A DNA stretch of 64,000 nucleotides from Tubulanus polymorphus (Eukaryota > Animalia > Nemertea): contig NC_134030.1 in assembly GCF_964204645.1 (NCBI RefSeq), forward strand, positions 22,714,210 through 22,778,209. The letters run 5' to 3'. Of this stretch, positions 25,567-63,844 are shown piece by piece (position 1 is the stretch's first letter; each line of letters opens with the position of its first letter). The position numbers and the translations under genes are program-made. Under the pieces are notes generated by a model. The model was given only the letters and a program-made list of their open reading frames with translations, searched no databases and was not told where the DNA came from.

Positions 25567-26568
25567 ATGAGCTCAAACGAAAGTTCGATGTGTTTGATTG
25601 AAAAGTACGAATGGGTTTTTCCAATTACGCGGAGTTTAACGTTCGCAATACTGTATATATTTCCGGTATTGAGTTTGATCGGATTTGTTCTGATTGTTCT
25701 TGGCACGTACAGAAAAGCCCCGTCCAGCTCTGTACATTTCTTCATGCTCGTTTTGGGTTTGGTTGATTTGTACGCGATTGTAGCGAATAATGTCACAGCG
25801 TTGATGGACAATTACAACATCAGATTCAGTAGAGCTATGTGCATCGTGAAGGCTTTCAATCTAGATTGTCCCAAACAGATAGCTATCTGGATCCTGGTTC
25901 TGATGACGGTTGATCGCGCTGTTGCGGTCTCCAAACCTCTCAAAGCTGCCACTTTATGCACTGTCGCGAGGGCCAAGAAAGCTGTTCTAGGATTAAGCCT
26001 TTTTCTGATGATTTACCAAACAATTTGGGCCGCTTTTCACGAAGGCAGAACTGTATATAATTTGTATACAAGTTGTAAAATTATAGATGCCACGGGTTAC
26101 GCGGTTTTCCAACATTTGAATAATGTTTTAGCGTTGTATTTACCATTTCTGGCAATCGTTGTGGCGAATGGTGTCATAATCGTAAATGTTAGAAAGTCCG
26201 TTGAAGTTGATACAAGTGAAAAAGCTACTGATGCGAAGAAACAAGTGGCCGCGAAAAGAATTACTGTTCTCGTTGTTTCAACATCAGTTGCATTTTTATT
26301 CCTCTCATTTTTGAAAGCGTTGATCATCATTTTGTTAATGGAAAAGGGAAATATTACCCAAACCTTCGGGTTTTATTTCACTCACTGTGAATACGAGGCG
26401 TATGGTGCGTTTCTAATGTTTGGTGAATTGGTGGGTACAATGTTATTGAATGCAAATCACTGGGTCAATGGTTTTATCTTCATCTGTAGCGACAGTTTCC
26501 GTAATGAAGTAAAAATTAACACTTTTCCTATTTGTAGACGAATTTCTGACTCACTGTTTTCCGATTAA
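25567..26568 (+). CDS. Class A GPCR 4, orphan
   Basis: 333-aa ORF; 7TM; LGLVD, VDRAVAV, NHWVNGF. Confidence 0.92.
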   Translation: MSSNESSMCLIEKYEWVFPITRSLTFAILYIFPVLSLIGFVLIVLGTYRKAPSSSVHFFMLVLGLVDLYAIVANNVTALMDNYNIRFSRAMCIVKAFNLDCPKQIAIWILVLMTVDRAVAVSKPLKAATLCTVARAKKAVLGLSLFLMIYQTIWAAFHEGRTVYNLYTSCKIIDATGYAVFQHLNNVLALYLPFLAIVVANGVIIVNVRKSVEVDTSEKATDAKKQVAAKRITVLVVSTSVAFLFLSFLKALIIILLMEKGNITQTFGFYFTHCEYEAYGAFLMFGELVGTMLLNANHWVNGFIFICSDSFRNEVKINTFPICRRISDSLFSD

Positions 26569-27871
26569 GTCGGTAGGTGTAATTTACTATTTCAAACTTT
26601 AAGCACTAGTACATCATACCAGAAAATGTCGGCTGATCAACTGATTGATAAATTTACGATCAACATTAAGGAATCAAGTTCAATCATCTGAGAAGTTGGC
26701 ATATAACTGAAGTCATCTCGATTTTTGAGTCCTATAGCTAAGTTGTATTGCACATTAAATCGTTATTTAAGTCCTCTCTATTTTTAGGTCCCATTGTAAC
26801 TGCAGACTTAAGTGACTAGTATTGACTTATCAGTTAGTTCATTTTTGTCACTCGAATCCTATACCTAATTTAAACAACGCAAGAACAAAATATTACTTGT
26901 TTTCAATGTTTATTAAGATACATGTTTATATTGGGGATAATTCAAATCAACGTTTCATGCGCCGGGAGAATATATAGCCATAGATAGGCTCCATTCGGTA
27001 GTTCTAGTTAGAAGTTCACCGTCTTAGCACTTCTTATAAGACTTTGTCAAATGAAAATAAGTAATAATATCAATTTTATTCCGGGGGGGGATAGGTGTTG
27101 GAATTGATAAGGAGAGTTTAATCCATTAGCTCTGCGCCGTTCTGCTTCCAAGTTGAATGTTGGATGCTGAAGGGCTTTCACAGTGACGTCATTATCAAGA
27201 ATTCACATATAGAACATAATTGGTTGCCACGTGCTAGTGAATTGTGGGGCCATTGCCATCAAAGTTGAACATGTTTATTACACAGTGCACCAAGGTACCA
27301 TCTTTATCAGCTGTTTATACGTTATTTCGCAAACCCGAAAACAAGTCGATTTTTGTGATCAAAAGAAAAATGTACTCGGTTGATCCTACTGGACCATGGT
27401 CCTTTATTATTCCATGTATTGTGAGTTTCTCAGCTTGAGTTTTACTGCAAACTTAAGAATCCTGTCAACTACAAAATGGTTCCTCTTAACTTCATTTAAA
27501 AACTAAGATTGATTCCTTGTTAATTAGAAAAATGGATCACAGTTTAAGGGATCATTAGAATTCTTATGAAACGGTTTCGTGTTTAGTTATAAATGGCATT
27601 TATGCGCATGCGGCTCATTTCATATTCACAGAAATTTGATTGGCGAATCAATGATTTAAATAACGCGGCACCGCTGTAATTTCACTTCATTCAAATTTTG
27701 AACCTGTATGGCAGTTTAAGGACTTTATTTCTAGTAGCACTTTATAATAAAAGGTAAATTCGTTGCTAGAGTAGATTATTATGATTTGTAAAATACATGT
27801 ATGTACGTAAATAATTACTTTCTGTAGTCTGTAGGATATATATGCCGTTTTATTCTAGGAAAAGAGAAAAG

Positions 27872-28858
27872 ATGATTTATACAAATATTTCATATGAAGA
27901 TATGTGTTGGACTAAGATCTATGGATATTGGGTGGTTCCGATAACTTTCAACCTGAACAGGACGTCAGCATACGCGTTTCCTGTATTGAGTTTGATTGGT
28001 TTGATAATCATCGTTTTGGGAACTTACAAGAAGTCGTCGACGAGTTGCGGCCATTTTTACATGATGTATTTAGGAATGGCTGATTTTTACGCGATATTGG
28101 GTATCGAGGTTCCTTATCTGATGGATATATTCTACGTGAAATACAACAGACCCATGTGCATCGCCAAGACATTCCACGCGAATTGCCCGAAACAGATTTC
28201 GATCTGGATCCTGGTTCTGATGACGGTTGATCGCGCTGTAGCTGTTTCTAAACCTCTCCAAGCTGCCACTCTGTGCACTGTCGCTAGGGCTAAGAAAGCT
28301 GTAGCGATTGTAAGCGCTGTTTTGGTCATCATTAATATTATTGGAGCAGCTTTTCACGAGGATAAAGATCTAAGTGGTCAATGGACAACTTGTATGATAG
28401 TAAACCTAACCGGTTCAGCGATTTATTCAAATCTAAACAACACTTTAGCACTGTTTTTACCATTTCTTGTCATTGCTGTAGCGAATGGTGTTATAATAGT
28501 TGGCGTGAGAAGATCTGCTAACATGGACGCAACTCAACAAGCCACCGATGATAGAAAACAAGCCACAGCTAAGAGAATCACAGTTTTAGTTATTTCAACA
28601 TCACTGGCATTTTTAGTTCTTTCATTTCTGGCGGCTCTAACAGAAATTTTGGAATATGAGCACGGTTCAAAGACATATGTTTATTACTTCACACATTGTG
28701 AACACTTGGCTTATGGATCGTTCATGATTATCGGTAATTCAATTGGTACCGTTCTATATCAGGCAAATCACATGGTTAACGCGTATATATTCTTGTGCAG
28801 TCGCAGTTTTAGAAATGACGTCAAGATTGGAGCTGCTTCATTCTATAATAGATCGTGA
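27872..28858 (+). CDS. Class A GPCR 5, orphan; closest paralog of GPCR 1 (inverted)
   Basis: ATG at 27872 follows the acceptor TTCTAG at 27858. Aligns almost residue for residue with GPCR 1. Confidence 0.92.
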   Translation: MIYTNISYEDMCWTKIYGYWVVPITFNLNRTSAYAFPVLSLIGLIIIVLGTYKKSSTSCGHFYMMYLGMADFYAILGIEVPYLMDIFYVKYNRPMCIAKTFHANCPKQISIWILVLMTVDRAVAVSKPLQAATLCTVARAKKAVAIVSAVLVIINIIGAAFHEDKDLSGQWTTCMIVNLTGSAIYSNLNNTLALFLPFLVIAVANGVIIVGVRRSANMDATQQATDDRKQATAKRITVLVISTSLAFLVLSFLAALTEILEYEHGSKTYVYYFTHCEHLAYGSFMIIGNSIGTVLYQANHMVNAYIFLCSRSFRNDVKIGAASFYNRS

Positions 28859-40299: not shown

Positions 40300-41829
40300 A
40301 TGGTGTCGATATTTCGCTTCGGTTTGTGTTTATGCGTGATTGTCACGTGTATCTCGACCTCGGCTTGTGTACCGAGCTGGAATCATCAGCGGACCCGTTC
40401 CCAACCGAACCCTCTACCTAAAGTAAAAGTGAACGAAAACGGATTCTTCGTCGACGACAGAAACAGAGTTTTGATTCTGCACGGATTGAATTCAGTCGTG
40501 AAAGAATTTCCCTGGTATTCTAAAGATCTTCTCAACGACACGGTGTTAGACTACTTCCAGCAGTGGGGGTTTAACGTCATCCGTTTGGGAACGATGTGGT
40601 CGGGAGTCGAACCCCAGAAGAACGCGTACAACGAGACGTACCTGGATGTGCTGGATACGATCGTGCGCAAACTATCCGCGAGGGGTATCTACGCCTTTCT
40701 GGACATGCACCAGGACGTCATGTCGCGACGATTCGGAACTTACGACGGATTTCCGTCGTGGCTGGTCGACTCGCTTCCTAAACCCTCCCATCCGTACCCG
40801 TGGCCTTTCCCGGATGATAAGTTCCAACCGGGGAATTGGGCGTTGCAATATCTAACGGAGGGGTGTAGCGTCGCATTTCAGGGATTCTACGAGAACTACA
40901 ACGGGAGTTTGAGTCAATTCGCCAAATTCTGGAAGAAAGTAGCCACGAAATTCCGCTCTAGGTCTGGAGTACTCGGGTATGAGTTAATTAACGAGCCGTG
41001 GGCCGGAGACGTCCTACATCAGCCCAGTCTATTCCTACCAGGTAACGCCGGCCGCAGGAATCTACTTCCGGCCTACGAGTTACTGCACGACGCGATACGA
41101 TCAGTCGATCAGCAGACGATCGTGCTATTCGAACCGGTCACGTGGGGCGTTATATTCAACGGTAAATACGCCGGAAGCGGATTCTCGCACGTACCCGGTG
41201 GCGCCGCCTATCGGAACCGTACGGCGCTATCGTACCACATGTACTGTTGGGTTCTGACGGACGCGGACCGCCACAAGCCGTACCCCGTCCTGAAGCGCAT
41301 TCTCTGCGACGATGTCTGGGCGTCGACTCTGTTCAAGACGGCGGTCGCCGATATCAAGTCGCTAGGATGCGGAGGTCTATTGACCGAGTTCGGCAACTGT
41401 CAACCGGATAAATCTAAAAACTCGACCGATACAGTCGAGTGCGAAAACGTGATGAAACTGGCCGATGAGAATCTGCAGTCGTGGACGTACTGGGACGTGA
41501 TATTCTTCAGCAGGGGTCAAATACAGTGGGATATTGCAAAACCGTTCATTCGTACTTACCCGCGAGCTATAGCCGGTACACCGGTATCAATCTCTTACGA
41601 CCCGAACACTTACATATTCATGTTCTCCTACTCTCTCGACGCCAGTATCGCCGCTCCGACCGAGATATTCGTTCCCAAACTGCACTACCCGAACGGGTTT
41701 TCCGTCAAGTTGTCAGACGGTGTCGCATGGACGTACGATCGGCAATCGTCGGTAGTTTCCGTGAAACTGAACGCGAAAATACCGTCAGCGACGACGATTT
41801 ACGTTCGCATTGCTCCTAACGTTCAATAA
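40300..41829 (+). CDS. Endoglycoceramidase (glycoside hydrolase family 5), secreted, intronless CDS
   Basis: Signal peptide MVSIFRFGLCLCVIVTCISTSA; WGFNVIRLG..WSGVEP; LDMHQD; acid/base YELINEP; nucleophile LTEFG; RTYPRAIAG followed by a C-terminal beta-sandwich. Acceptor at 40287, AATAAA at ~42046. Confidence 0.93.
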   Translation: MVSIFRFGLCLCVIVTCISTSACVPSWNHQRTRSQPNPLPKVKVNENGFFVDDRNRVLILHGLNSVVKEFPWYSKDLLNDTVLDYFQQWGFNVIRLGTMWSGVEPQKNAYNETYLDVLDTIVRKLSARGIYAFLDMHQDVMSRRFGTYDGFPSWLVDSLPKPSHPYPWPFPDDKFQPGNWALQYLTEGCSVAFQGFYENYNGSLSQFAKFWKKVATKFRSRSGVLGYELINEPWAGDVLHQPSLFLPGNAGRRNLLPAYELLHDAIRSVDQQTIVLFEPVTWGVIFNGKYAGSGFSHVPGGAAYRNRTALSYHMYCWVLTDADRHKPYPVLKRILCDDVWASTLFKTAVADIKSLGCGGLLTEFGNCQPDKSKNSTDTVECENVMKLADENLQSWTYWDVIFFSRGQIQWDIAKPFIRTYPRAIAGTPVSISYDPNTYIFMFSYSLDASIAAPTEIFVPKLHYPNGFSVKLSDGVAWTYDRQSSVVSVKLNAKIPSATTIYVRIAPNVQ

Positions 41830-44138: not shown

Positions 44139-47100
44139 ATGATGTTGAGGAACTGTTTCGTACTAATGTGCGTCGTAGTTTTACTACAACTTGGAAATAT
44201 ACACAGTACAGAATTGTCTCGAATGAGGAGAAAGAGACGTAAGTTACTCAAATTATCAGTGACTTTGTTTTATTGTTTAGTTTACGCGTAGTATAATCGT
44301 TCCACAAACTTAAAACATATCAATTATTTTCAGGTGTCACGCATATTGAACCTCGCCCAGTTCCCACGGGTCAACTCGACCGTAAAACCCAAGGACAAGA
44401 GATAGTTTATAAATGCAAACTAGCGGTTGGAAAATCAAAGATTAAGGCAAAGTTGATATTTCAGCAGAAGTGTCGCGGTTCTGAATCATGGGGCCCTGTT
44501 CGTGGAGGGATACAACCGCGTAGTTATAACCAATACGCTTTAGCTTTAGCCGAGCTGAAATTCAAAGCAGATTTCAAACTACACAATGGAACGGCTTTTA
44601 GATGTCTTGTAAAGGAAAACCCAACAAATCCGGAACCTATTCGTTTTGATGTGATTGTATTTCTTCGTCTCGGTAAGTGAAGGTTCATTTCCTTATAATT
44701 AATTATCGAATCGGCAAACGAGAAGAAATTATAATCAATCAATGCGTGTCTATGAGCATTTAAATTGTTTATAGTTCATTATCAATTACAACTGCCTCAG
44801 ATGAACACAAGTGTCGACGATCAATGCGCCGATTCAATATGAAATCAAAAGTATTTCCACTGGTGAAATGCGAGACTGATTGAATAAATTCATGATTGAT
44901 ATAAGATCATACTTGGTACAGATTCGCTTTGTCTAACAATAGAATTTGGACTCGACGTTTATGTCATTACGGTTCATTCAGTGAAATGATGGATTTGATA
45001 ATCAGAACAAATGAACTTCTCAAAACTTCCTCATTCTTCAAATCAACAACATGACAGTGATCGCAGTTTATTGTTCATATCATATTTAGTTTCGTGCGCG
45101 TTGTTATCGAGACATGGCTTTGTGGTAAAGACTGCAGAGGTCGTCAGACTTTGGATCGACAGATTGAATGCTGTTGTTTTCAATAACGTTAACAATAGTT
45201 TATAAATACGTATCTATCTATTACTAAAATCAAATAGAGAATTAACGCGTGGTTAATGCCACGTTGCCGTTGCCGCTGTCGCTGTCGCTGACATTTACAT
45301 TTACTAGACATATTTTATTTCGGACACGAACGTATTTCGAATAGTTTTATGTCCAACAGTGCAACAAGTCATCATTGGGTTTGAATTCCGGTGAAATATA
45401 ATTTGGTTTCCGAAAAATAAAATCAAATTCGAAACCGCCATTTTGAGTTTGAATCCGATACGCATCAATTCAATTTGAATTTTAATACTCAGCGCTTTAC
45501 ATATTTCAGTTACATCAAGAACAGCCTTGTTTTTATATAATTTAGCATCTAGTCACTTTTAGTGTTGGACACACTTTCTCTTTCAAATAATTTTTGAAAA
45601 TATTATTTGCATTTAAAAAAATGTTAATAATGATAATAATAATAATAATAATGATTTTATTTTGTCATGTAAAGACACCATATAAATTAATTTTTCATAC
45701 ACACATAATACTTAAAAACCCATACATGGCACGGATGTACGGATGTATCCGTGCCATGTATGGAATTTTAAGTATTATTTCAAAGACAATGAAACAAAGA
45801 CTGAACAGTTTACTCTCATATTGCATTTGAAAACATTTTATGAAATCATACACTAACAAGAATTTGATCAGCCAGAAAAATTAAATTGTCAGCGTACAAA
45901 AACCTAGCTTGATTTTTTGGGGGTTGACTTTTTGGAGGGGCCAAGATTTTCAAGGGGTGTGTGGCCTGGACCATCCTCTAGGTCGAAGCCGTATTTTTCT
46001 AAAATTTGCTTGGTTAATTTTCGTTTCAGACAATACAACTACTGATCCGCCAAAGGTTAGTATCTGGCTGTCAAACCCACACTTTCTATTGTTAAACCGT
46101 GTACAGAAAATTAAAATTAAACCAGCCGAACTATGGAACTTGGATCCGGAGTCAAATAAAAAAATGCGCTACTTTAATTAAACTGAATGACTTTTTATAG
46201 GTTAAGATGAGTATGATGTAATTTCTCAGCACCGCGCGTTTAAAATCTTTAGAAACGGGTTAAACGGTCGACGGTTTGTTGATGATAAAATAATTATTCT
46301 TACATCTTTCAGACTACATCAGACCCCCATCACCGAACTATTGTGATACTTTACATCACGTGTGGAGCGACTGGATTCATTTTGATCGTTCTCATCGCAG
46401 TATTCACTATTCGCAGGTATGAACTCGACCGGAAACCACGGCATACACTGTGTGTGGTTCCGTCGAAATACCTACTAACCCTAAACCTCAACAAAATATC
46501 TGTATAGTCACCGTAACGTCTTAAGATGCTGACAGAATTAATACACGTTATCCCCTTAATTAATGCCCAGTAATTTCATACATCAAAGAAAACTTTTATC
46601 GTCACAGGTCTAGAAGCTTTCAGCTCTCTGGACTATGATGAAAATGAGAGCTTGATTGTCATTGAAATGTTTGGTTGTTCGGAATTCTGCGTTAAGCGGG
46701 ATAAGATCTCCAGTCTGAGAGATCACTAAGATTCATATTTACAAATAATTTGACTTTTTAACAATCATGATGGATTATGATAATAACAGATTAATACACG
46801 AAATATTTACTACTTTCCTCACGTAATTTTATGCTGCATAAATTACCCCCATTTCAGATGCAGACGTCGATCGCCCGGTGAAGGTCATGTGGAGACTTCA
46901 ACACCACCTCCACGGCTCAAAGCAACCGACGACGTGTTGTTAAACGTCTACGAAGACCCGGACGATGGCAGAAATTCCGATAATGTTTCAAACAGAAAAC
47001 CTGTGAGAAAATCTGAAACTAGATTACATAACGTACAAACTCGTAAATCCATGAGAGCCGAGAAGGGCAAATACACAACTGTTTATATGGATATGGAAGC

Positions 47101-47287
47101 CGAGAAGGGCAAACATGCAACTATCTATATGGATATGGGAGCCGGGAAGGGCAAAGATACTTCTCCTTACATGGATATGGAAGCCGGGAAGGACAAAGAT
47201 ACTTCTCCTTACATGGATATGGAAGCCGGAAAGGGCACAGATAAAGTTACATACATGAATTTGGATGCGAAGTTTGTCAAGAGATAA
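44139..47287 (+). CDS. Type I Ig-superfamily receptor A: one C2-set-like Ig domain, TM, cytoplasmic tandem YMDM motifs
   Basis: Exons: 44139-44238 (signal MMLRNCFVLMCVVVLLQLG + RRKR), 44334-44672 (Ig: YKC...ADFKLHNGTAFRC), 46030-46055, 46313-46416 (TM IVILYITCGATGFILIVLIAVFTI), 46858-47287 (tail). All phases are compatible. Confidence 0.82.
45720..45763. repeat. Isolated 44-bp palindrome
   Basis: CCATACATGGCACGGAT-N10-ATCCGTGCCATGTATGG (perfect 17-bp arms). Confidence 0.85.
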
Positions 47288-49175: not shown

Positions 49176-52100
49176 ATGAAGAATCTATGGAGGAATCTGC
49201 AGCAGTTTAAATTGATATGCGTGATTTTACTGTTGATTCTGATCCCGTACAGCAACAGGTCACACGCGTTTAGACTCAAGAGAAATACAGGTAAGACTTG
49301 AAAGAACATATCACAGTTATCTATAGAAAATATATTACATAAGATAAAACCTATCACCAGACTGGAAACTTTTATTTGAAATTTCTAGGACAAAATGATA
49401 ATAGTTCAACCACTTGAACTGATAACACGTGATTCAAATAAAAGACCCGTTTACCTCAAACATTTTAACTGTTATTTTGTCTTCTAAATGATGAGTCATC
49501 TAAATGTGGATCAATTTTGAAAATTCATTTCTTATTCGGCAAGTGCAATTATTTATCAATTTAGGGATCAATTTTACCCTTTATTGATCAGTGACTTGAT
49601 ACGTATTTCATTACAAATTGTCGGCTTAATCGTTACAATTAATTTGAATATTGACTTAGACAACATCACAGGATACAGTCTTATAAATGACAGACATTTT
49701 GTGTGTATATTAGATTTTAAAAACCTCAAATCAGATGATAGTTCATTTATAGACAAGCCTTTAAACTGTGAAAATTCTATATTACAAGATAATTTCTTTT
49801 TTACTGAGGTCAGAGGCTGCAGTTGCTGTTAAGGTTGGTTAAAAGTTACCAAGAATATTACATATATTGTGTATTTGATATTTCAGCACCTGATGGAGTT
49901 GTACTGGACAGTGTGAATGTATTACCGGGTACTAGAATATTACGTATATTGTGTATTTGATATTTCAGCACCTGATGGAGTTGTACTGGACAGTGTGAAT
50001 GTATTACCGGGTACAAGAATATTACGGATATTGTGTATTTGATATTTCAGCACCTGATGGAGTTGTACTGGACAGTGTGAATGTATTACCGGGTACAAGA
50101 ATATTACGTATATTGTGTATTTGATATTTCAGCACCTGATGGAGTTGTACTGGACAGTGTGAATGTATTACCGGGTACAAGAATATTACGTATATTGTGT
50201 ATTTGATATTTCAGCACCTGATGGAGTTGTACTGAACAGTGTGAATGTATTACCGGGTACACCTATGTTACTGTCGCAGGAAGGTAAAACTGTTAGTATT
50301 ACCTGTAAACAGAGCAGCTCTACAGCGACTGGTGTTGAATTCCAGCTACAAGTGAACAGTGGACCAGGAGGGACCTGGACTGCATTACCTACACCACCAG
50401 CACCAGTTTGGAATATTTTACCTGAGGCTGGTAAAATGTATAAATGTGTGGCCACTAATTCTGCTGGAAAGAAAGAAAGTCAATTCTACCAATCAGATGT
50501 GATCAGTAAGTAATGCGTTCATCTACGTACGTTATAAGACTTTCAGAGGTATCTTGGTTTGAATCTGAAATAAAGAGTTTTCACAGTTTGACATCTGAAT
50601 TCATCTTTGATTAACATCAGTTGCATTCGCGCAACTAGAAATTTACGCGCAGTATCGCCGGAACAAAACAATCATATCTTGTGATGCAACCACGTTTTCA
50701 CACGTGTTTTCGATAAAGGGTGGCTCCAACTACATGTAAATCATGACAATAGGAGCTAAAAGATGGTCTCAGTATTTGTTAGACTGGTCGCCTGTCCAAT
50801 ACTGCGCCACCTGCTTATTCGTAGTCAGAATCTAACTGAAGGTAGAGACCGGCAACCAGTCTTCATTACTAACGCAATTGTGGAAACTTAATTTAGGTTG
50901 TTGTTGATTGTTGATTTTCATGTTTATAACAATATTTCACAACTATCGAAATCTTTTGATTTTTGAATCACTTTTCTTTAGAGTCTAAACTTTTCTTTAG
51001 TTTTGAAGAACAAAAAGATGTATAATGTGTTAGTTCATATATTACAGGTATAAAGATACGTGAAAACCCGTGTAAACTGGCTCAATTCCAACCATCACTG
51101 GCTTGTACTTGTGAAGCCACTAGTAAGATTGGTAATCCAAACATCAAAGTAAAATGGTATGCCGATGGATATACTAGAGGTTCAACGGCTATTGAAAATA
51201 TAAGAGAGCAAGGGGTAAATACTGCGCTGAAAGATGGAGTTATCAACAGAAATGAGATTTATTATCTATACAAGATTGACGCAACATTGATTCAATGTCA
51301 GTTGAGGAGATATAATGGTTTAATACTACCGAGACCGCTTCAAAATCAAATTCTTTATGAAACAAAAATGGATGTTACGTGTAAGTAAGAAAAGAAAAAC
51401 AGTGAGTTATTTTTATATAATATCAGACAGGAGTCAGGAGTGAGTTTAGGACATTTGTACGGGGTGTCCGCGTATGAATGTCCCTGTGTTACGTTGCGTG
51501 ACGGTCAAAAGTTATGTTTTCGATCACCCGTTCACAATTAAACATTTCATTAAGAAAGTAAGATAGTTACAACAAAATCTACCAAGTGAAATATTTTTCC
51601 ATATTCAATAGACGAATTTCTTCACATAAATTAAGGTTTTAAACTGATCCAGTTTAAACGTGAAAAGAATTAGAATGATTGAATATCTAGTTAATGAAAT
51701 CCAAATAAATACTTAATGTACATTCAGATTTTCCTGATGAAATTCAAACACGAGGTACTTTCACCGGAGAACCTGACATTAGAACCGAAGGAGAAGTTGT
51801 AGAATATATTTGTAGAACAGAAGGTGGGAGGCCCGATCCTACAGTGATATACCAACAGAAGAGAAGAGGTTCTGAACAATGGGAGCCAATTCCTCCTGAT
51901 CCACAACCTCGTAAAGTACCTCTTAAAGGGCATTTAAAAGGTTTTGACACGACGTACAAGTTTAAAGCTGATTTCAAACTGCACAATGGAACGTCATTTC
52001 GATGCGCTGTAAAGGAGAACCTTACGTTTCCAGAACCTCAGCAATTTAATCCAATTATTGTTCATTGTAAGTAACAGATTTATTCGTCGAATTTGAAAAA

Positions 52101-55100
52101 TCCTTAGAATAACAGTTTTTCTAGCCCCAGTCCTAGTAGACCTATCTACCCTGAGCATATGTCTTGATGCTATTAGGTTCGAATCCCTGCGTGGTATAGT
52201 CTCTGATTTCATCAGGTTCGACTCCCTGCTGAGGATGATGGGTCTACTATTACAGGGGTTTAGAACTCCGCAAGGGCAGATATTTGTAACAACTTTGACT
52301 TTTACTTTTATCAGATTTTGCACCAGATTGCAAGAAATCCAGTGAAAATGAAACAAATGCAGCGTATATTGTAACAGTTAATAGTAACCCATTGACTCAA
52401 CAAGTTACATGTGACCCTCCAGCTGTCGTTCAAAAACTATCAACCTATCAGTGGAATATAACGATACCTATCGTAAACAGTACCACAACTGACTATAGAG
52501 GGCGGTGTTTGGCTGACGGTATTAATGAAGGGGTCATTGATGTCGCTGGTTATCATAACGCCGGTAAAACTGATGAAGCAGGTAAGATTCTGCGTCAGAA
52601 CTGGATGAATTGTATCTGAATCTGAACAAATGATTTAGGTCCGGATGCAACATGATAAGAACTGTTAACATCTCATGTCGTCGTAGGAAAAGTCATTATA
52701 TTCACCTGAATTAACACTTTTAATTCTCGGGTCTCAATTTGAAAGTTTTAGCTTCGATTTAATTGCTGTTACAATAGAATAGCATAATAGCTTATCATGA
52801 TTTAATAAAGATTTCTGATTTGTTTAAATTTCAGTTCAAGAAGATGAGAATGGAGGAATAGTAGTGTTTGGTGCTGTAATCGGTAAATTACTGATATTAG
52901 TGATGATATTACTGATTCCGATAATACTGTTTATAATGTGGCGTCGTGGCTGCTGTAAGTTTTACAAGAAACCATCATTAAACCTTAAAAAAACACAATG
53001 ATACAAAATAATGAAATATTGTTTTTTATGGGCGTTACTTCCACTGACTGAACTCTCGAAAGTAAATGAAGAAACAGCAACAAAAATATCTCTTCCACAT
53101 ATCGAGGTTCCGTTGAAAGTTCCTCCTAAAAAGTTCACCAAACGAACAGTTTAACAAGAATATAACGCAGTATCATAAGTTCAGTTGTCGCCTCAAAATC
53201 AATCACAGCATCATCCATTTTCTCTGGTGGATCAATTGGTTAGGTTTTGTTGTGTGTCAGGTAAACGTGCATCATGTAGGACAAACAGTATTTCTGTTTT
53301 CTAATTCACAGTCACGTGTTTGTGTCCGAAACCTGAAGATGCGATTGAATTGTTGCGTTGGACAAGTGAAACCTGGTATAAAAAAGGTAAGATTCTCTCA
53401 CATGATTTACTGCACATATTCTCAGATATCGGTTTGATAATTTTAGGTGTTGTTTTCTCTTTGTAGATCATGAGAATTGGGTGAAAACACGTGACCAACT
53501 GCAGCCAGGTATTTACAGAACAGTTAACCCTTTATTTCCATAACATATAGAATTTCTTTGCACGAACACAGTACCTGATGCCCTAATGTAATGAAGCAGT
53601 ACATGTTGTTTATAATAATCGCTGTAAATGATACAGGATGATGGTTTTTCATTTATATATTTGTAGCTGGAGACTTTGAGGTCATTGACACATTCAGTCC
53701 ATGTATAATAATAAAATTGTTTATTTATCAATCAACTATTTGCTTGTGAGGTCAGTGAATTCATTTGGAACTTGATTTACTATGAATTATCTTTCATTTC
53801 GTTTATAGAAACTGTTAGAATAATTGTCGATGTTTACGGAACTGAGAATGATTGGATGATAACGAGAGATAAGGATAAACAAGGTAAGAGTAGTGAGTGG
53901 TAAGAGTAGTGTTGACTCAGTTGCCAGGGGAAGTGCAGAACCGACTGATTGGTATCTTGTAACCCTACACACCACACTGTCTCTAAATATGACACTTCTG
54001 CCTCCTATCTTCATCCAGCAGTAATTCAAACTGTTTGATGCACAGTTTATTTGACTATTGAACAAATAATTTCTATATTTCATTTCAGCAATAGCTATCA
54101 GAGAATTCCTGTTCCAACAGTTATCATATGATCAAAGTAAGTTATTGTTTACCTAGAGTTAAAGTTCATGTACAAGTTTACATGTACATGTGTGTTATGC
54201 GAAAATGTACATGTGTGTTATGTTAACATGTACATGTGAGTTATATGAACATGTACATGTGTGTTATGCGAAAATATACATGTGAGTTATGTGAACATGT
54301 ACATGTGAGTTATGTTGCGCATGTTAATGTTGCGTACATGTGCGTAATACACAAACATATACATGTACGCGTTATTCAAAAGAACATATTCAGTTTTGTT
54401 AGCATGCACATGTGAGTTCTGTTGACATGTTTAGTTAACAGGTACTTGTGATTTGTTAACATAGATTTAAGTTTAAGTTTAAGTTCATTTACGGTACATG
54501 TTCAGATGCACGTGTGAGTTGTCAGTTTAATCATTTCAGTTTTAACATGTACTTGTAAGCAAGCATTGTGTTCAGTCAACACAAGTTTCATCAATGTTTA
54601 TATATTTTCAGGTATGTTAAATTTGGTGAAAGAAATTCTAAGTAAGTATGACATTTCGGTATTTTATCAACTCAACTTCAACTCGAATCATCGATTCAAA
54701 TGTGTTTGTTATTATTTATTGACAGGAAAATACGCGAGAATAAACGATTTAAAAACGGAACTATCAAATGAGATCGGTAAGATTTGATTGAATTCAGTTA
54801 TTGATTTATGAGTTTATTGATTATTATTCTACTGTCAACTCATTTTGTAAATGTATTACAGATACATTACTGAACATGAAGAGGTCAATAGATGGCGCTG
54901 ATGCAGTTTACAATAGAGATGAAGGTATCGTTATTATTCACTGTTTGATAGATCATTTTGTACAGCTATACACCCATCTATGCACCCTTCTGGAAATATG
55001 GAAAATCTGATTTGAAAAGATGGCAGTCGTTTAGGTTTTGATTGGTCTCTACCGATTTCAAAATTCCTTTCTGGCGTGTTCATTTCGACCAGTATACGCC

Positions 55101-58100
55101 CTACCTATTCACGATAAGCTATACTGTAAACCTGATAGAAGCGGCCGGTAGAGAGTTTGTAATCTGTAAACCTGATAGAAGCGGCCGGTAGAGAGTTTGT
55201 AATCTGTAAACCTGATAGAAGCGGCCGGTAGAGAGTTTGTAATCTGTAAACCTGATAGAAGCGGCCGGTAGAGAGTTTGTAATCTGTAAACCTGATAGAA
55301 GCGGCCCCGGTAGAGAGTTTGTAATCTGTAAACCCGATAGAAGCGGCCCCGGTAGAGAGTTTGTAATCTGTAAACCCGATAGAAGCGGCCCCGGTAGAGA
55401 GTTTGTAATCTGTAAACCTGATAGAAGCGGCCCCGGTAGAGAGTTTGTAATCTGTAAACCTGATAGAAGCGGCCCCGGTAGAGAGTTTGTAATCTGTAAA
55501 CCTGATAGAAGCGGCCGGTAGAGAGTTTGTAATCTGTAAACCTGATAAAAGCGACCGGTAGAGAGTTTGTAATCTGTAAACCTGATAGAAGCGACCGGTA
55601 GACAGTTTGTAATCTGTAAACCTGATAGAAGCGGCCGCTAGAGAGTTTGTAATCTGTAAACCTGATAGAAGCGGCCGGTAGAGAGTTTGTATTCTGTAAA
55701 CCTGTACCAGTCTATAGAACCGGGTTATAGCAATTGTGAGACACATTAATTCAATTAAATTAGTGGTAATAAACAGCATAAAACAGTAGCAATCCATCTT
55801 GTAAATGTTCCATCCTCAACGAATAAAACAGCATACAACCTTTGTTCTAAATAGACCCATGATCCGACGAAAAACCTGATTGCTTCAAGTGTTTCATGTT
55901 TTAACGTGTTTCAGATGAAGTTCATGTTAGTTTTATGACGCAATTGAATGAAGAGAAAAGACCCCTGACAAACAAAGAGAAAGGGTTCATCACAGATGGT
56001 CAGTAAAACTATGAATTCTATCTCTGAGTTCCAGTTTGTTGTTTGCGCACAGCGAATTGCCAACGAGTTTTAAAAGTGCTTTATTCTGACACAAAATATC
56101 AATTTTCACTGAAAATGCATTTTGAAATATGTCTTCAAATAGTTAGCAAAATGAAGCAAGTGCTTAAAGAGCTACTACTCTGTGTCAATCACTGAGCTTT
56201 TACTGTAAGCTAAAAACATTCTAAATATTTAGTTTTTCTAAGTTTTAAATCCCCAGTAAACGGTTATTATGAATGTCTATATTTTCAGTTGCTTCAGCAG
56301 TTGATGCTAAAGTTGATTTTTTTGCTAAAATGTCCGGTAGGTTCCATAAATCATTTCAGTAAAAATACTGTGGAGTTTGTTGTGGAATCATTGAATAATT
56401 GATAGTGTTTATTTTTACTGTAGATGCTGAATTATGTGAACGAGGAATATTCAACATAAAACGTAGGTTTTAATTCTCATTTATCCTCGACTGAGTTTAT
56501 AAATACATGTGCTCTATAATCTACTGTACATGTAGATTTTATCTGTACATGTACATGCGTAAACCGTTCGTGTACATGTGGGTTCTCTGTACATGTGCAT
56601 ATGAGTTATCGTAACTAGTGAGTTCTGTGCTTATCACTTTCGTTATATTTCAGCTACTGTTGAAATTGCTGGTAAGTTATAATATTCACTATGATGTTTA
56701 AACTGGTGCTGATTCTGTTCAATTATAACTGAAATATCACTGTATCTTTTTATAGAAAAGTTTGTTAAGGAAGCACTTGATAAAGAAGTTAAACAACAGA
56801 ATGGTGAGTGTTTAGTTAATCTAGGAATCTATGAGGAAGGGGCTGACAACTATGAACTGATTACAAATTATACATATTTTGTCTAATTACAGGAAAACTC
56901 GTCACACAAATAGAAAACCAGAAAGTAACTGATGAAACAAAGACAGGTTTGTTACCAGAAAATCTGATTATCATAATTTATCCATGATTTATTCAAATAT
57001 TGTCAATGAATCTTCTTTATTTAACTATCTACTGGTACTGAAAACATGTACTTAGAAATTTACCCCGCGATATGAATATCTTTATGGTTGGTATTACAGA
57101 AATGGGAGTGGCCGACTGGGACCGTTTTGTGAACAAAGATATTTGTGGTAAGACTGAAAATGTTATTCTTTCATAATTTGTCACGCTTTGTAATTAATCG
57201 TTTCGTTAATGAGAAATCCGATGTACAATAAAACCAGCTAGACCCGGTAATGTGCAACAATTGGCAACGTTGTCAAAATTCATCCGCTTTGTGGGAAATT
57301 TAAGGTTTAATAATACCCGGTTAATCCAGATGTATTTGGATGAAATTCTAGTTTGAACTGATCTGATCAATATTCATGTTATTCTATTCATGTATTCATT
57401 TGTAGAATCAGTTTTATTGGCGTCAAGTTCGCAGAAATTAGAAGAGAACAAACATTCTACAGAACTAGATAAAAGTAAGTTTAAACTTTCTTTGTCCCTA
57501 GAAATAAATTTACAGAGTATTTGATGACCATGAATTGAAGATGAAATTTATCGATGTCATCAGATTATCAGAGGCATCTGTTTTGATTCAGAACCAGGTT
57601 TTAGCTGAAAGTTTGTATCGACGTGAATAATCTTCAGACCGAGTTCATCGTAGATGATTAAAATCAGTTGTGTTTAAACGCAAAAAGTTAAGCAATATCA
57701 TCGTACAAAATCAATAGAAACCATGTTTTGAATGTCATGCATATATCGAATGAGATGGTTCCGATAATATCCAAATCAGATCATCACCAGAGGATGGCTC
57801 CGAGTGATTTCTGTCAAAAATGTCTGCACATTTTGGGAAACTACTTTTTTGTGATTAGTTTATTTCATTGTTTAACTATATTTTCAGGTATTTGTGAAAT
57901 AAGCCGAGATGTTTTAGGTAAGAACTAAATAATAGTAACAAACTATAAAAATCGAGGTCTAGGGTCGAGAGCAGACGCTTAAAAAGAAATTATGAGAAAC
58001 TTTAAAGGGATTTTTTGTCCCTTTCGTTATTTTCTGATGATTGAATTGAAGTTTTATCAGATACTATTTGAAAAGAGGTTTAGAATAGAAGTAGTGATGT

Positions 58101-61100
58101 CACTGAATTGCTGTGTTTGATCAAAGCCGATTTTGATTCGTTTTCTATTTTTTCAGAAATTAAATTGAGAATCGCAGTTTTCGAATCTATCAAAGGTAAG
58201 AGGTTTATGTATGGATTGCATCACAATCAGCAGGGTTTATTCCATCATTTTCCAAGATTCAAAATGAGCTCAATTTTTTCCTGCAACTCAATTTCAGTTC
58301 TGATGTCATTTTCATGATAATGTTTAGAATTGTTTCATGTTAATTCATATTTACGAATAACTTATAGAATTGTACGCTGGACGAGCTGAAAGATTTCAGA
58401 AAGAACTCAAAGAGAAACTGAAACAAGTGGAAAATGAGGAGGAATTGAACAGAATAATTCACAGTTCAGTTTGTCAGGCGTTTAAATATATCACTGATAT
58501 GGATGAAAGTAAATATCGATTTTATATCTCAAATTATACATTCACTTAACATGTCACATATTATGTGTGAATGAATGCTCATGTAACATGTTCATGTGAA
58601 TGAATGCACATGTAAAATGTTCATGTAAATGAATTCACATGTAACATGTTACATGTGAATGAATGCACATGTTACATGTTGGTTTTCTGATATATTTCAG
58701 AAACTCTGATGGATAATGAAGTTGTAGGATATGGAGGTTTGTATATAATTCAACTTTTTCAATCACAAACCAGTTTTCATTAAAAAATGTGTTTTATTTT
58801 CTCTATTTATATTTCAGTGAGTCCAAAAGAGATAAGTGAGTTCTGATTGATATTTATAAATATTCTCAGTACACTAGACTGCGCGCTTGCCTCTGATTTC
58901 ATGTTGTAGTTCGTCATATTTACCTGTTTATAAGTTGTTTGTGATGTCAGTGATTTTCTATATTGATAGATTCTAAACTACATGAATTAGCCGATAAAGA
59001 GTTTGAAGATAAGAAAGGTACTGTACACATAACAAAGTGCGAAATTCAACGTGTTTTATGTTTTAAATCTCATTGATTATTATCAATGTTTATTATAGTC
59101 GGTGAATTTAATCTAATAAAGACACCTGAAGAAATAGTAACTCTAACACTGAATATACCGGCACAACTCAGCACTGGTAAGTGACTATACAGTGAAGTGT
59201 TACTGAAAAGTTGAGAATCTGGCAAATCGGTTTATTACAAATTTAATGTGTTCTTAAACTGTTAGAATTTCATTTAATTTTTGTAGATTTGTATTCAGCT
59301 GAACGAGATCCAGTTATTTTATGGGACCGAGCAGGTATTGTATAAGTCTGTTATAAATCTAACCTGTTTAATGCCACTGATCTCACCATGTATTTCATCG
59401 GTCCCAACAGTGGCATTATGAAAGACTTTTTCTGTGATAACGGAATTTTTAGCTTCTTAGGAGCATTAGCCTTGAATATTCTGCAACTGATCTTTGTCCC
59501 TGAGAAGATGGTTAACTCTTGTTTTTATGTGAATTTCAGTGGAATATTTCAAGGATGAATTCATTAGCGCAATACAATCTGATGAATCATTGAAAACTAC
59601 TACTCGAACTGCTTTAGATAACAGTAAGTTACATCTACAGTAAACTACATTTACATCTACAGTAAACTACATTTACATCTACAGTAAACTACATTTACAT
59701 CTACAGTAAACTACATTTATATCTACAGTAAACTACATTTACATCTACAGTAAACTACATTTACATCTACAGTAAACTACATTTACATCTACAGTAAACT
59801 ACATTTACATCTACAGTAAACTACATTTACATCTACAGTAAACTACATTTACATCTACAGTAAACTACATTTACATCTACAGTAAACTACATTTATATCT
59901 ACAGTAAACTACATTTACATCTACAGTAAACTACATTTACATCTACAGTAAACTACATTTACATCTACAGTAAACTACATTTACATCTACAGTAAACTAA
60001 ATTTACATCCGCAGTAAACTACATTTACATCTACAACAAACTACATTTACATCTACAATTAGATACATTTATTCACTAAGATTTTCAATCATTGAAATTT
60101 GTTTGTGGTTTTTTGAAGAATCAAGCAACATCAACGATTTGTTGAGGAAAGAAAACTCGAAAGGTGAAATTGTCTCATGAAACGTGGATAAGACGTTTGT
60201 TTTTACGAACCGAATAATTACACTGTGTAAAATGATTCAAACGTTGTCTTCTATTTTCAGTTGTTGATAGAATTTATGATGATGTGAAAAACAGAATAAA
60301 ATCAATATCTACCGGTTTGTATTTTAATAATTTACTATCAATTCTTATATTTGCATCTAACAATTCTTGCATCTGTATTTAAATAGTTTATTATCAATAC
60401 TTGCATTTTAATGTGAGATATATTTCCTCCTGTTGAGGTTTTTTTCATATCGTATATCATAATATATCCTCATATGCATATTATGTCATATACCACTAGC
60501 ATATACAATTGCATCAATCATGTATATCATATATCAGTTATCTCATCACATCATATCACATATCATACCATTTATGCTTTTAAAACGTAATTTTGAAGGT
60601 GATAATTTTCATTTCATTTTTCATCACGGATTGATTTATTTGTATTTCTATTTGTGATTTCAGAGGAATTAAAGGAACGAGGAATCGTAGCTTATAGAAG
60701 TGAGTGAAATTTCGCAGTTTTGAGTTGCCCTAACCCGTAACCTTTACCCTAATTAAATTATTAGACTCGTTACCTGTATATTCCTAACACCAAACTCCTA
60801 ACACTGAGACTGAACTAAATTCAACCGTAGTTAAAGTTAACTGTATGAATTGACCTGTTTAGATCTACTCAATATTTGAATTATTGTTGTTTTCTGTTTT
60901 TCAGTAAAAGATGAAACAGCGAGTAAGTACTGATAACAACTTACACGTTAAAGTCTACATAAATAGATTTATAAAATGATATAAGTTATGTTTTAATAGC
61001 TGTTAAATCCAATGAAACTGCTCATAGTAATTTACAGATGATGAAATACTTCCTTCAAGAGAAAGGGTGGTAAAAGAATAATATGTTTCACTCTCCCTGC

Positions 61101-63844
61101 AGTAATCTATTGTGTTTATCCCGTTTCAGTGAAACACATTAAACAAATTTTTGCAAACAGAATCCAAACGGAATTTAAAGGTGAATCAATGGACTGTGAG
61201 GTGTTTTAATTAACAAATTAAACCGGTACCGGGAGTAACGGTGAAGGTCGATCGGTACCGATTAAGGGTGAAGGTCAACTGGTATAAAGTAAGGGTGAAG
61301 GACGAATGTATTTTGTTGGAGGATATTTGTCGCCATAGAAGCATAAACATCAGTCAATGTCACAGCAGTTTCAAAAAACATTTTATAATTACAGATTCAC
61401 TAGTGACTGTTTTAGAAGAGAAATGTAAGAAGGCTCGCAGCAGTTCGCCTCTCAAACACTGGACATATGATATATCTGGCGCGAGTAAGTTCACAGTGAA
61501 ATCAGTTGTTTGTGATTTATAATAGAATTCTATTGTATAAAAACTTGTCTATTGTTTATTACATATAGTGTCTGTACTCAGTGAATTTACCAGTAGAACT
61601 CTAAAGACAGACACAGGTTATTGGAAACAAGTCAAAGAATGTTTTGGTAAATAATAAATTCTTCTTTGACTGAACGTTTTATTAAATGATCTGATTTTCA
61701 GGTTTTGAATAATAATTGTTTGTTCTGTTTGAATAGGAGATGAAATTGCCAGTGAAACAAATACAACTAAACTGACAAAAATAGGTGAATATCAATACAA
61801 TAACAACAACTCATTTTTCAGATTAAGAAAACTGTGGCGTCGAATTCATTGAAGATGATATTCATCAATCATGAAATATAAATGTATACCTGGATCAACA
61901 TATGTATGTAATTGTATTGTACCTTGCACATAATACACGTGGACACAGATTAATTATAAATACATCCCTAGCCTAGAGTCCCTCATCTTATGTTTGTAAA
62001 AACTATCTGAACTCCTATAATTGTATAATAATCTTGGATGAAATGATGATGAAAATAAAATTATCATTATCATTATTATCAATGTGATAAGATCTTTAGA
62101 GGCATCTGTTTTGATTCAGAGCCATGTGTTACGCATATAGCTGTATAACCACTGGCCAAGTGTACTTTTGGTATAAAGTTTAACGTGTGCAACTATAGAT
62201 TAGTAAAAGTGCAAGCAAGTTACGCAGTGTCATCGGTTCAATTGTCGGCTCAATATCAAACATAGCCACGTGAAGACGCCATGTTTTAAGCGTTAAACTA
62301 AGAATGTTTATAAGTCATCACAGTTTGTTCACGGTTTGTATCGATGTGAATATTTGTTTATTTATCTATTTGTTTTCAGTTGACGAGTGTTTGGGTGAAT
62401 GCACTAAAACAATGAGTGATAAATGGAATACTGGTGAGTTACTCCCCTCATGAGTAACCCTTTATGAGAGGTACTCATGAGTAACCCTCATAAGTACCTC
62501 TCATAAGTACTCCTCATGAGTACCTCTCATGAGTACCCCTTATGATCAGTACCTGTATTCATACCTGACATCTTGAGTACAATTTGAGTACAGGACCTAA
62601 ATACAAATCGTAATTTGGGTGCCTGAGTACCAAAGCTATTGGACCTTGAATTAGTGACGGGATATGTCATTGTAGTGAGTACATGAAGTACCAAATACAG
62701 ATACTCAACTGAGTACCCGGTCCCGTTACCTGAATCGTTTAAATGATGTAATGATCAGAAATCATGAAGTTGAAACAAACGGCAAACTAAATCAGATTTC
62801 TGTGAGCTTATATTTCATGTTTTAATATTTTTAGACGATTTTAAGGGGCGCAACATGATTTTAGAGACAGGTAAATATTCCGTATATAATTCACATAGGG
62901 CCGGTTCATCACTACTCAAAGTTAATACTAGTCTAAGACGATATCAGTTCTACAACCGATCTCACAACTTTAAGACGAATTGTGAACTTAGGTTTCGACT
63001 ATGGAACCTGGTTCAATCACAAACCAGTTTTTATCTTAAAAATCTATTTGATTTTCTATCTATTACCATGAATTTTTTTCAATCAAGCACAAACGTTTCA
63101 ATGAAAGTAATGAGTTAGGAGTCTAGATCCCTCCTAATCCCTGAACTCCTAAGACTTGACTCCTAAGCTGAGTCTTGAAATGGGCTAAATCCAACAAAAA
63201 ATATAAAATATAGCTGCGAAGCAGCGCTAACGGGTTTTCTGACAAGCCATGCGGCCAAAACAAAAGGAATAAGAGAAGATAAAAATATTTCATTTGCGGA
63301 ATTCGAACTCGATGTGGCACCTTCAGAAATAAAAAAATTATTGCCGGGGATTCGAACCAGTTATAACTGCATAAAATAAAAAAATAAAAACACTCGTCAA
63401 CTGAAAACAAACAAATAAATAAATAAATTTTGACATCGATGCAAACTGTGACAAAACAGTGATGACTTATAAACATTCTTAGTTTAACACTTAAAACACG
63501 GCGTCTTCACGTGGCTATGATTAAGCGGACAATTGAACCGATGATACTGCGTAACTTGCTTGCACTTTTACTAATCTATAGTTGCACACTTTAAACTTTA
63601 TACCAAAAGTATGAGTGAATATAAGTTTATGATTGAATATCTAAGCAGAAGACAATTCTATTGTGTTCACTATTGTATTTCGTATTATGTTTATATTGTA
63701 GGGCGAAGTAGTGAAATGTCTGACGATGGTGGAGTAAGTCAGCGGCCATCAAGAGGTTATGGCCGGTCACCTGATGTTGGACAAGGTCAATCTAGTGGTG
63801 ATAGTAACGTAATGAGTGGTTATGGTAGATCGAGCTATCGTTGA
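49176..63844 (+). CDS. Type I Ig-superfamily receptor B (~1079 aa, 38 coding exons): signal, 3 Ig + 1 degenerate Ig-like domain, TM, cytoplasmic region from 31 symmetric small exons
   Basis: Exons: 49176-49290 (signal + RLKR), 50215-50505 (Ig, YKCVATNSAG), 51048-51380, 51728-52066 (CRTEGGRPDP...HNGTSFRC), 52315-52581, 52835-52954 (TM), 31 small exons from 54089 to 62870, and terminal exon 63702-63844. The joined CDS is 3240 nt and open; AATAAA at ~63965. Confidence 0.8.
49851..50260 (+). repeat. 82-bp tandem repeat x5 spanning an intron/exon junction
   Basis: Acceptor-exon starts recur at 49887, 49969, 50051, 50133 and 50215. Confidence 0.95.
55124..55703. repeat. Intronic 40/42-bp minisatellite (CTGTAAACCTGATAGAAGCGGCCGGTAGAGAGTTTGTAAT)n
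   Basis: About 14 contiguous copies with no spacers. Confidence 0.95.
59629..60057. repeat. Intronic 22-bp minisatellite (TTACATCTACAGTAAACTACAT)n
   Basis: About 19 copies starting right after the donor at 59624. Confidence 0.95.
62163..63611. repeat. ~230-bp inverted repeat (62163-62392 versus 63388-63611)
   Basis: Direct reverse-complement match with few mismatches. The left arm includes the acceptor and first 13 nt of exon 62380-62433. Confidence 0.9.

Follow-up and report, generated by a model that had tools for sequence, protein, structure and literature searches.

Introduction

Several animal gene families are known to combine immunoglobulin (Ig) domains, small symmetric exons or NACHT domains in ways that resemble the locus described here. 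The chicken BG genes of the butyrophilin family form an Ig-TM multigene family whose helical tails are spread over many small exons that split codons; the number of exons differs between genes and some tail splicing occurs (PMC5938342). The sea-cucumber protein AjNLRC4 has extracellular Ig, a TM helix and an intracellular NACHT, and is reported to be a phagocytic microbial receptor (PMC8699970). In the zebrafish NLR-B30.2 family, one-exon N-terminal repeats precede a large NACHT exon and are shuffled across a tandem family (10.1101/027151). The schistosome MEG genes contain runs of tiny symmetric exons (PMC4350168).

Here we describe LOC141906974 (gene B) of the nemertean Tubulanus polymorphus, which lies in a window (the whole stretch of DNA analysed) of 64,000 nucleotides. 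Gene B is predicted to encode a type I membrane receptor with a signal peptide, four Ig domains, a TM helix and a tail of about 610 aa. Like chicken BG, it belongs to an Ig-TM multigene family with a helical cytoplasmic tail of many small exons, whose number depends on the gene. BG proteins contain one Ig-V domain and a coiled coil encoded by near-uniform 21-nt heptad exons, whereas gene B has four Ig domains, exons of 18-141 nt, bundle units of 125-190 aa and NACHT-LRR in its relatives, and no homology to BG was detected. Four relatives (P0021-P0024) have the Ig-TM-NACHT design of AjNLRC4, by sequence only. Two TM helices are predicted for AjNLRC4, which is without LRRs; the relatives in Tubulanus, in contrast, have 4-10 Ig domains, one TM helix, an LRR-like region at the C-terminus and, in some cases, helical units, and gene B itself differs from AjNLRC4 in having no NACHT. 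As in zebrafish NLR-B30.2, repeats upstream of the NACHT exon differ in arrangement from member to member of a tandem family through shuffling, but the zebrafish proteins are cytosolic, their repeats are of about 30 aa and one exon, and they have neither an Ig-TM part nor multi-exon units. Gene B shares with schistosome MEG genes its runs of very small symmetric exons. MEG proteins are small, secreted and encoded almost wholly by micro-exons, with demonstrated splice variation, whereas the array of gene B encodes the intracellular part of a receptor of 1143 aa, for which RefSeq lists isolated skips only.

Gene B is an Ig-TM receptor with a micro-exon tail

The original prediction was of a single Ig-TM receptor with a symmetric micro-exon array as its cytoplasmic part. 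RefSeq agrees, since in its model of LOC141906974 the TM exon is spliced to the array, and XP_074652586 (isoform X1, P0027) equals the model spliced from the DNA, minus the weak 53667 exon. Only isoform X3 of the product is without a TM helix, the membrane topology being that predicted from hydropathy alone. The four Ig exons (Table 1) give weak Ig_2/C2-set matches, and the Ig1 acceptor repeat is also tandem in all five fetched paralogues.

All 31 exons first listed, AG/GT-bounded, multiples of three in length and in an open phase-1 frame of 1632 nt in total, were confirmed from the DNA. The tail was found to be longer, with 35 phase 1-1 micro-exons and a terminal exon. Four phase 1-1 exons absent from the earlier list fall between the TM exon and 54089 (53312-53386, 53467-53508, 53667-53702 with a weak donor, and 53809-53883), and the terminal exon was likewise absent from it. 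The 35 symmetric exons have a median of 48 nt (22 are of 51 nt or less, none is of 21 nt) and make up about 54% of the CDS, the remainder being large Ig exons. Every intron of the gene, 41 of 41, is in phase 1. The chance of this is about 2e-19 at p = 0.35 each, a rough background rate for phase-1 introns.

Could the transcript stop after the TM exon, with the small exons belonging to another gene? Read-through of the TM donor meets a stop after 17 aa, and two RefSeq models (P0002, P0004) begin within the tail. Such an arrangement is nevertheless scarcely credible, because RefSeq joins TM and array in gene B and in 12 paralogues, and exon order and spacing are kept in every copy.

Table 1. Features of gene B and the neighbouring gene A (positions within the window).
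Feature	Position	Strand	Remarks
Gene A	44139..47287	+	exons 44139-44238, 44334-44672, 46030-46055, 46313-46416, 46858-47287; 332 aa
First coding exon, gene B	49176..49290	+	signal peptide (hydropathy maximum at aa 8) with basic RLKR site; phase 1 at exon end
Ig1 acceptor repeat	49850..50261	+	82 bp x5 in tandem: splice acceptor and first ~42 nt of exon
Ig domain 1 exon	50215..50505	+	phase 1-1; Pfam Ig_2 E=4e-4, below cut-off; matches RefSeq
Ig domain 2 exon	51048..51380	+	ectodomain exon with most variation; mean 71% identity to relatives
Ig domain 3 exon	51728..52066	+	C2-set-like; 24 close genomic copies
Ig-like exon 4, extracellular	52315..52581	+	no Pfam match; assigned by size, Cys pair and phase
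TM exon	52835..52954	+	internal donor 52882 gives RefSeq isoform X3 without TM helix
Tail unit U1	53312..56462	+	11 micro-exons; donor of 53667-53702 weakened, exon skipped in RefSeq X1
Tail unit U2	56654..58736	+	9 exons; first 18+48 nt, last 36 nt
Tail unit U3	58818..60699	+	8 exons: 18, 48, 78, 48, 84, 45, 54, 36 nt; dN/dS ~1.05
Tail unit U4	60905..62870	+	7 exons: 18, 51, 90, 78, 48, 54, 36 nt; best-modelled helical domain
Terminal exon	63702..63844	+	short Ser/Gly-rich end and stop; relatives carry U5 or a NACHT-LRR exon here

The tail is a stack of four helical units

The tail of gene B is made of four helical units (U1-U4) with a common exon-size signature and a junction motif. All three 18-nt exons are flanked by exons of 36-39 nt and 48-51 nt (permutation p = 2e-5, for a pattern picked post hoc), and leave-one-out searches with the junction motif give ranks of 1, 1, 1, 10 and 8 among 710 positions. 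AlphaFold2 places the elements of U3 and U4 in the same order, in models of low confidence (pLDDT 51 over the full tail and 68 for U3-U4). Unit-to-unit homology by hhalign is not significant (best E = 0.009, probability 4%), and BLAST between the units finds nothing significant.

The tail had been assigned to no recognised family, and this holds for both Pfam families and solved folds. Homologue searches, with single exons or RefSeq proteins as queries, return T. polymorphus only, and beyond this species the searches gave neither a homologue nor a matching fold. There was no match to the tail among Pfam families or PDB sequences, nor to its models in Foldseek. The best hits in VIA (Z 6.3-6.6) are small helical bundles such as sigma region 2, TM scores in Atlas are at most 0.29 (by query), and a metagenome scan came back empty. 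An ADP-ribosyltransferase match, sub-threshold at a best E of 8e-5 (E 0.17 against C3 residues 34-102), was dismissed as a chance similarity between helices.

An ESM feature search gives the Sey1_3HB cluster as the top match of U3-U4 (0.94), with GBP_C and GVIN1 lower, and the weak structural rows include a bacterial dynamin (Z 4.9) and the MxB stalk (Z 4.3). The units might accordingly be read as dynamin-family stalk-like three-helix bundles of the Sey1/GBP/GVIN type that oligomerise at membranes or remodel them as an effector. This is improbable, as the 160 shared features are fewer than the 170 typical for true family members, only three of the ten best named matches agree, no Pfam family matches, all Z are below 7 and the tail has no P-loop. 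With neither a profile or structural match nor a linked GTPase domain, the Sey1/GBP/GVIN stalk is a feature-search lead only.

An IYDDV motif had been pointed out in the tail. It is present but not conserved (IYNDV occurs eight times, IYGEV six times and IYDDV once), is neither an ITIM nor a YxxM, and lies mid-helix in the predicted model. A conserved tyrosine signalling motif (ITIM or YxxM) was not found in the gene B tail.

Paralogues reshuffle units and exons in frame

About 18 genomic copies of the tail family are found in T. polymorphus. Five paralogous RefSeq proteins map exactly to fetched DNA; from the first tail exon onward they have 43-58 exons, all in phase 1 and with GT donors, and every internal exon is a multiple of three. 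Whole units and single exons have been duplicated, lost and reordered in frame. Among the RefSeq relatives compared there are seven kinds of arrangement: U1U2U3U4; U1U2U3U4 followed by U5; U1U2(U3U4)x2U5; U1U2U3U4U3U5; U1U2(U3U4)x2U5U4U5; U1U2U4-NACHT-LRR; and NACHT-LRR with no units. In the genomic DNA of three of the five fetched copies a 15-exon block is duplicated in tandem, and single exons are lost in frame. The tail units of relatives average 74-84% identity to those of gene B, and sequence comparison indicates a family that is young and expanding.

The neighbouring gene A encodes a signal peptide, one related Ig domain, a TM and a tail with four YMDM motifs. Genes A and B recur as a pair along the cluster. 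A contig search for a neighbouring glycosidase gave no match.

Some relatives of gene B are predicted membrane-anchored NLRs

Five RefSeq relatives (P0004 and P0021-P0024) are predicted to end in NACHT-LRR. Their NACHT matches to PF05729 are above cut-off (E 1e-14 to 1e-16), and those of the LRR region are all below it (LRR_14 E 0.012-0.035, NLRC4_HD2 E down to 7.5e-5). Two of the five retain tail units upstream, as Ig-TM-U1-U2-U4-NACHT-LRR, and U4 stands before NACHT-LRR in P0022 and P0004. Ig, U1, U2, U4 and NACHT are co-linear on the same strand at C6:22.26-22.29 Mb and C9:306-321 kb; the NACHT-fused loci are known from coordinates and RefSeq proteins alone, and RefSeq models are predictions. 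That the ectodomain and helical units of gene B also precede NACHT-LRR in relatives had been missed at first reading. Because relatives join the same Ig-TM part, and in two RefSeq models the same units, to NACHT-LRR, gene B is probably a NACHT-less sibling of membrane-anchored NLRs. Its protein (P0020) has no NACHT, and with 36 of 36 candidates scored no NACHT exon was found next to gene B or in the array at 21.7-22.1 Mb. Trees of U2, U4 and Ig3-4 do not polarise the direction of NACHT gain versus loss.

The dN/dS is 0.5-0.7 for U1 and U2, 0.82 for U4 and 1.05 for U3, a range (0.5-1.05) that is compatible with relaxed selection as well. The values of U3 and U4, the decay of exon 53667-53702, the loss of U5 in gene B and the many broken NACHT copies across the genome would suit a drifting remnant. 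On that view the tail began as the linker of a TM-NLR from which NACHT-LRR has since gone, and the array, with little specific function, expands by unequal crossover under relaxed selection. We regard this as quite unlikely. None of the six copies examined has a broken frame or splice site, exon lengths change by multiples of three, and U1 and U2 have the lower dN/dS. One pairwise comparison places 15 gap columns in exons versus 560 in introns, with 94% versus 87% identity.

Diversity seems to lie in genes rather than in splicing

Combinatorial diversification by splicing had been proposed for this array, as in schistosome MEG genes, such that skipping would give many cytoplasmic isoforms per gene. 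The premise that a symmetric array allows skipping stands in part: every exon is symmetric, skips are frame-safe, and RefSeq isoform X2 skips 60119-60163 while X4 skips 62380-62433 and 62835-62870. Paralogues also lose single exons in frame, so exon deletions are tolerated. Over 12 loci there are about eight RefSeq micro-exon skips in six genes, two of these isoforms being in gene B, but the annotated isoforms are one event apart each and number 1-4 per gene, counts that reflect RefSeq annotation, and annotation pipelines under-report isoforms. Several introns interrupt long helices predicted in the AlphaFold2 model, and exon symmetry is not peculiar to the array, since the Ig and TM exons share its 1-1 phase. 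With isolated single skips in RefSeq, introns within helices and demonstrable diversity that is genomic, the combinatorial proposal is not supported and is unlikely to be correct. Most variety seems to reside in genes, not in splicing. Three sequencing runs of unrecorded type over 55750-59600 have no exon-exon joints and cover the introns; they behave as DNA and are therefore mute on exon skipping. A 580-bp repeat at 55124-55704 was kept out of the read-mapped region.

A probable NACHT-less member of an NLR-type immune family

We favour, at a probability of roughly 0.6, a membrane receptor with a mostly constitutively spliced, non-catalytic tail stack of four ancient helical units (125-190 aa), which belongs, without a NACHT of its own, to a young and expanding family of membrane-anchored NLR-type immune receptors. 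This reading builds on what the data establish, namely the gene structure, its uniform phase 1, the in-frame reshuffling of units and exons, the joining of the same Ig-TM part, with the same units in two RefSeq models, to NACHT-LRR, and the pairing with a YxxM receptor. Uniform phase 1 would make Ig, TM, unit and terminal exons plug-compatible, and unequal crossover in a tandem array could therefore alter tail length or the terminal module without a frameshift. Unit shuffling at junction exons happens whatever the function. More speculatively, ligand binding by the Ig domains might cluster the receptors, with the helical units serving as a stalk for spacing and self-association. Gene B and other NACHT-less members might be co-receptors, decoys or modulators of their NACHT-bearing siblings, and gene A might be the source of a PI3K-type tyrosine signal. 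Exon skipping would be a minor, tolerated layer.

A bolder possibility, of which we are doubtful, is that animal NLRs have in the helical unit a new domain for homotypic interaction or with an effector role. It would pair NACHT-less Ig-TM-unit receptors such as gene B with Ig-TM-unit-NACHT-LRR receptors in a membrane sensor/helper network. Phase-1 exon shuffling would rewire the tail length, the order of units and the terminal module of this network, and skipping of micro-exons and the TM exon would tune them.

The effector domain of an NLR usually sits in the region between TM and NACHT, which in this family is occupied by a repeat for which neither a homologue nor a fold was detected. The combination of a helical tail built from micro-exons, spiralian membrane-anchored Ig-NLRs and pairing with a YxxM receptor is absent from the papers searched. 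One genome shows how uniform intron phase permits immune receptors to swap their signalling ends. If the tail is a mere spacer, it would still be an unusually clear example of exon shuffling.

Gene structure of LOC141906974

The 31 micro-exons of the original prediction were confirmed, with AG/GT ends, lengths divisible by three, an open phase-1 frame and a total of 1632 nt. A splice-site scan trained on them recovered most of the set and detected extra exons between the transmembrane (TM) exon and 54089; on the reverse strand the same scan gave no comparable exon run. The gene is real and is already in RefSeq, as uncharacterised. All 41 of its 41 introns are in phase 1, and those of the array measure 81-990 nt. 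RefSeq isoform X1 (1143 aa) is the same as our spliced model without a weak exon at 53667; the donor of that exon carries T at position -1 versus G in paralogues. The RefSeq model also joins the TM exon to the micro-exon array, as had been predicted, and it is extremely improbable that the two belong to separate genes. The RefSeq proteins of this gene and its relatives are computational models, which are usually RNA-seq-guided.

Features of the window
Feature	Position	Strand	Description
LOC141906974, full gene	49176-63844	+	signal-peptide exon, 4 Ig-type exons, TM exon, 35 tail exons, short terminal exon
TM exon of LOC141906974	52835-52954	+	internal donor at 52882
Ig1 acceptor repeats	49850-50261	+	acceptor with ~42 nt of exon in tandem, 82 bp x5 (paralogues about 3-10 copies); open Ig1 exon from last copy only, others spare acceptors
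Gene A	44139-47287	+	single-Ig TM receptor; tail with four YMDM motifs on 42-bp repeat
GH5 glycosidase	40300-41829	+	single 509-aa ORF, Glyco_hydro_5_C domain, presumably endoglycoceramidase-like; stretch GC-richer
Five GPCR genes	19525-28858	both	intronless, rhodopsin-family, closely related, 333-338 aa
Multi-pass ORF	13995-15020	-	hydrophobic, 341 aa, no Pfam match
PHD-finger ORF and adjoining 295-aa ORF	1787-3458	-	PF00628, E 6.5e-6; 295-aa ORF with Cys/His motif, no Pfam match; together possibly a transposon relic

A modular helical tail

Charged residues make up 35% of the cytoplasmic tail, and a scan of it found no second hydrophobic segment, P-loop, ITIM or YxxM motif. It had not been recognised as a member of any described family, and searches of Pfam, PDB sequences, Foldseek, VIA and Atlas bear this out, with no significant match. 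Identity with the Sey1/GBP/GVIN helical stalk was a feature-based lead (0.94, 160 shared features) that found no confirmation; a tail working as a dynamin-stalk-like effector is very doubtful.

The tail is divided into four helical units, U1 to U4. Each of the three 18-nt tail exons has a 36-39-nt exon before it and one of 48-51 nt after it (post hoc permutation test, p=2e-5). A motif of the form xELxxRG(I/F)V is common to the unit boundaries; in leave-one-unit-out tests it ranked 1, 1, 1, 10 and 8 among 710 positions. The exon sizes of U3 (18,48,78+48,84,45,54,36 nt) parallel those of U4 (18,51,90,78,48,54,36 nt), and AlphaFold2 predicts for both a long helix, a strand, two helices, a long helix, a short helix and a strand (pLDDT 68). 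Neither hhalign nor BLAST gave a significant match between whole units, which leaves exon pattern, motif and model as the grounds for a common origin. The unit junctions are where paralogues recombine, in seven arrangements such as doubled U3-U4, U3 joined to U5 (a unit absent from LOC141906974) and U2 joined to U4.

Splicing

The array was originally proposed to diversify the receptor by exon skipping. RefSeq lists four proteins for LOC141906974: the full form, one without 60119-60163, one without 62380-62433 and 62835-62870, and a TM-less form (X3), in-frame from the TM exon's internal donor at 52882. The annotation of 12 loci contains about eight micro-exon skips, spread over 6 genes, and TM-less forms in 3 genes, with one event per isoform. 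These isolated in-frame skips speak for tolerance of skipping rather than for combinatorial use. Several introns interrupt long helices predicted by AlphaFold2, which would argue against free skipping. No splice joints appeared in three sequencing runs, which behave as DNA and carry no information on skipping. We consider combinatorial splicing of the array unlikely. TM-skipping isoforms also occur in two paralogues, where the product would be a secreted ectodomain plus tail. Isoforms of LOC141906708 lose two or three Ig domains together.

Family and selection

Homology queries were single exons or RefSeq proteins, the joined model being confined to scripts. The 141-nt exon as sole query against 1.84 billion representatives gave 5 protein matches, all Tubulanus polymorphus (Nemertea) RefSeq models. 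Searches bound by length and word limits found no homologues beyond this species; homologues elsewhere may have escaped them because of these limits and because predicted-protein sets often lack micro-exon genes. The 141-nt exon and the U1 region each occur in 18 genomic copies, the U4 region in about 27 and the Ig3 exon in 24 close copies, mostly in tandem on the window's chromosome. Most family copies have a single-Ig gene A about 7-12 kb upstream; four paralogous gene A tails in 200 kb of fetched DNA have only about 40% identity to the tail of the window's gene A and keep several Yxx[MIL] motifs.

Pairwise dN/dS among six copies, from non-independent pairs and without statistical test, is 0.58-0.65 for Ig exons, 0.68 for U1, 0.51 for U2, 1.05 for U3 and 0.82 for U4, which suggests either relaxed or diversifying selection on U3-U4. 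Relaxed selection would suit a tail that is a drifting remnant, a reading we consider quite unlikely. The 5 paralogues in the 200 kb keep the exon order, and their RefSeq proteins map exactly (43-58 exons counted from the first tail exon, phase 1 throughout). Their exon lengths differ by multiples of 3, and one pairwise alignment has 94% identity in exons versus 87% in introns, with 15 versus 560 gap columns.

NACHT-bearing relatives

In an ectodomain search, 4 RefSeq proteins shared the Ig-TM part (Ig3 identity 90-92%) and continued into NACHT. Among the relatives, known here by P-labels, P0022 reads Ig-TM-U1-U2-U4-NACHT and ends in an LRR-like region, while P0004 reads U2-U4-NACHT. By their coordinates, Ig, U1, U2, U4 and NACHT follow one another on a single strand at two loci, as do U2, U4 and NACHT at a third; NACHT-fused loci are known from coordinates and RefSeq proteins. 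A NACHT exon search of the main array and the surroundings of LOC141906974 found none. A 100/99 branch of the U2 tree has both NACHT-linked copies on the same side; the U4 and Ig trees lack resolution, so that the trees do not polarise NACHT gain or loss. At 18.07-18.09 Mb and 17.59-17.61 Mb (C6), two near-identical copies, + strand tail units face a - strand NACHT exon ~14 kb off, possibly after an inversion that split tail from NACHT. The Ig-TM-NACHT relatives P0021, P0022, P0030 and P0029 also have Ig exons multiplied in blocks. P0003, P0015 and P0017 carry extra Cys-rich juxtamembrane segments after the TM helix, possible palmitoylation sites, which are common to NACHT-bearing members and absent from LOC141906974.

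Probable diversification of the receptor family at the DNA level

No description of this receptor family was found in the literature searched. Its tail construction is like that of chicken BG (PMC5938342), its architecture is like that of AjNLRC4 (PMC8699970), and exon shuffling upstream of NACHT also occurs in zebrafish NLR-B30.2 (10.1101/027151). Tests of LOC141906974 as a BG, MEG or NLR member failed, the NLR failure concerning this gene itself; the family is a variation on known kinds of system. The data show the structure and the shuffling. An immune role and partner binding are suggested by analogy with the NACHT relatives and AjNLRC4 (PMC8699970). The reading that we favour, at a probability of roughly 0.6, is that the tail forms a non-catalytic helical stalk on an Ig receptor belonging to an immune family, and that the family would diversify at the DNA level because all modules are phase-1 compatible. 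NACHT-less members such as LOC141906974 may then serve as co-receptors, decoys or modulators of their NACHT-bearing siblings.
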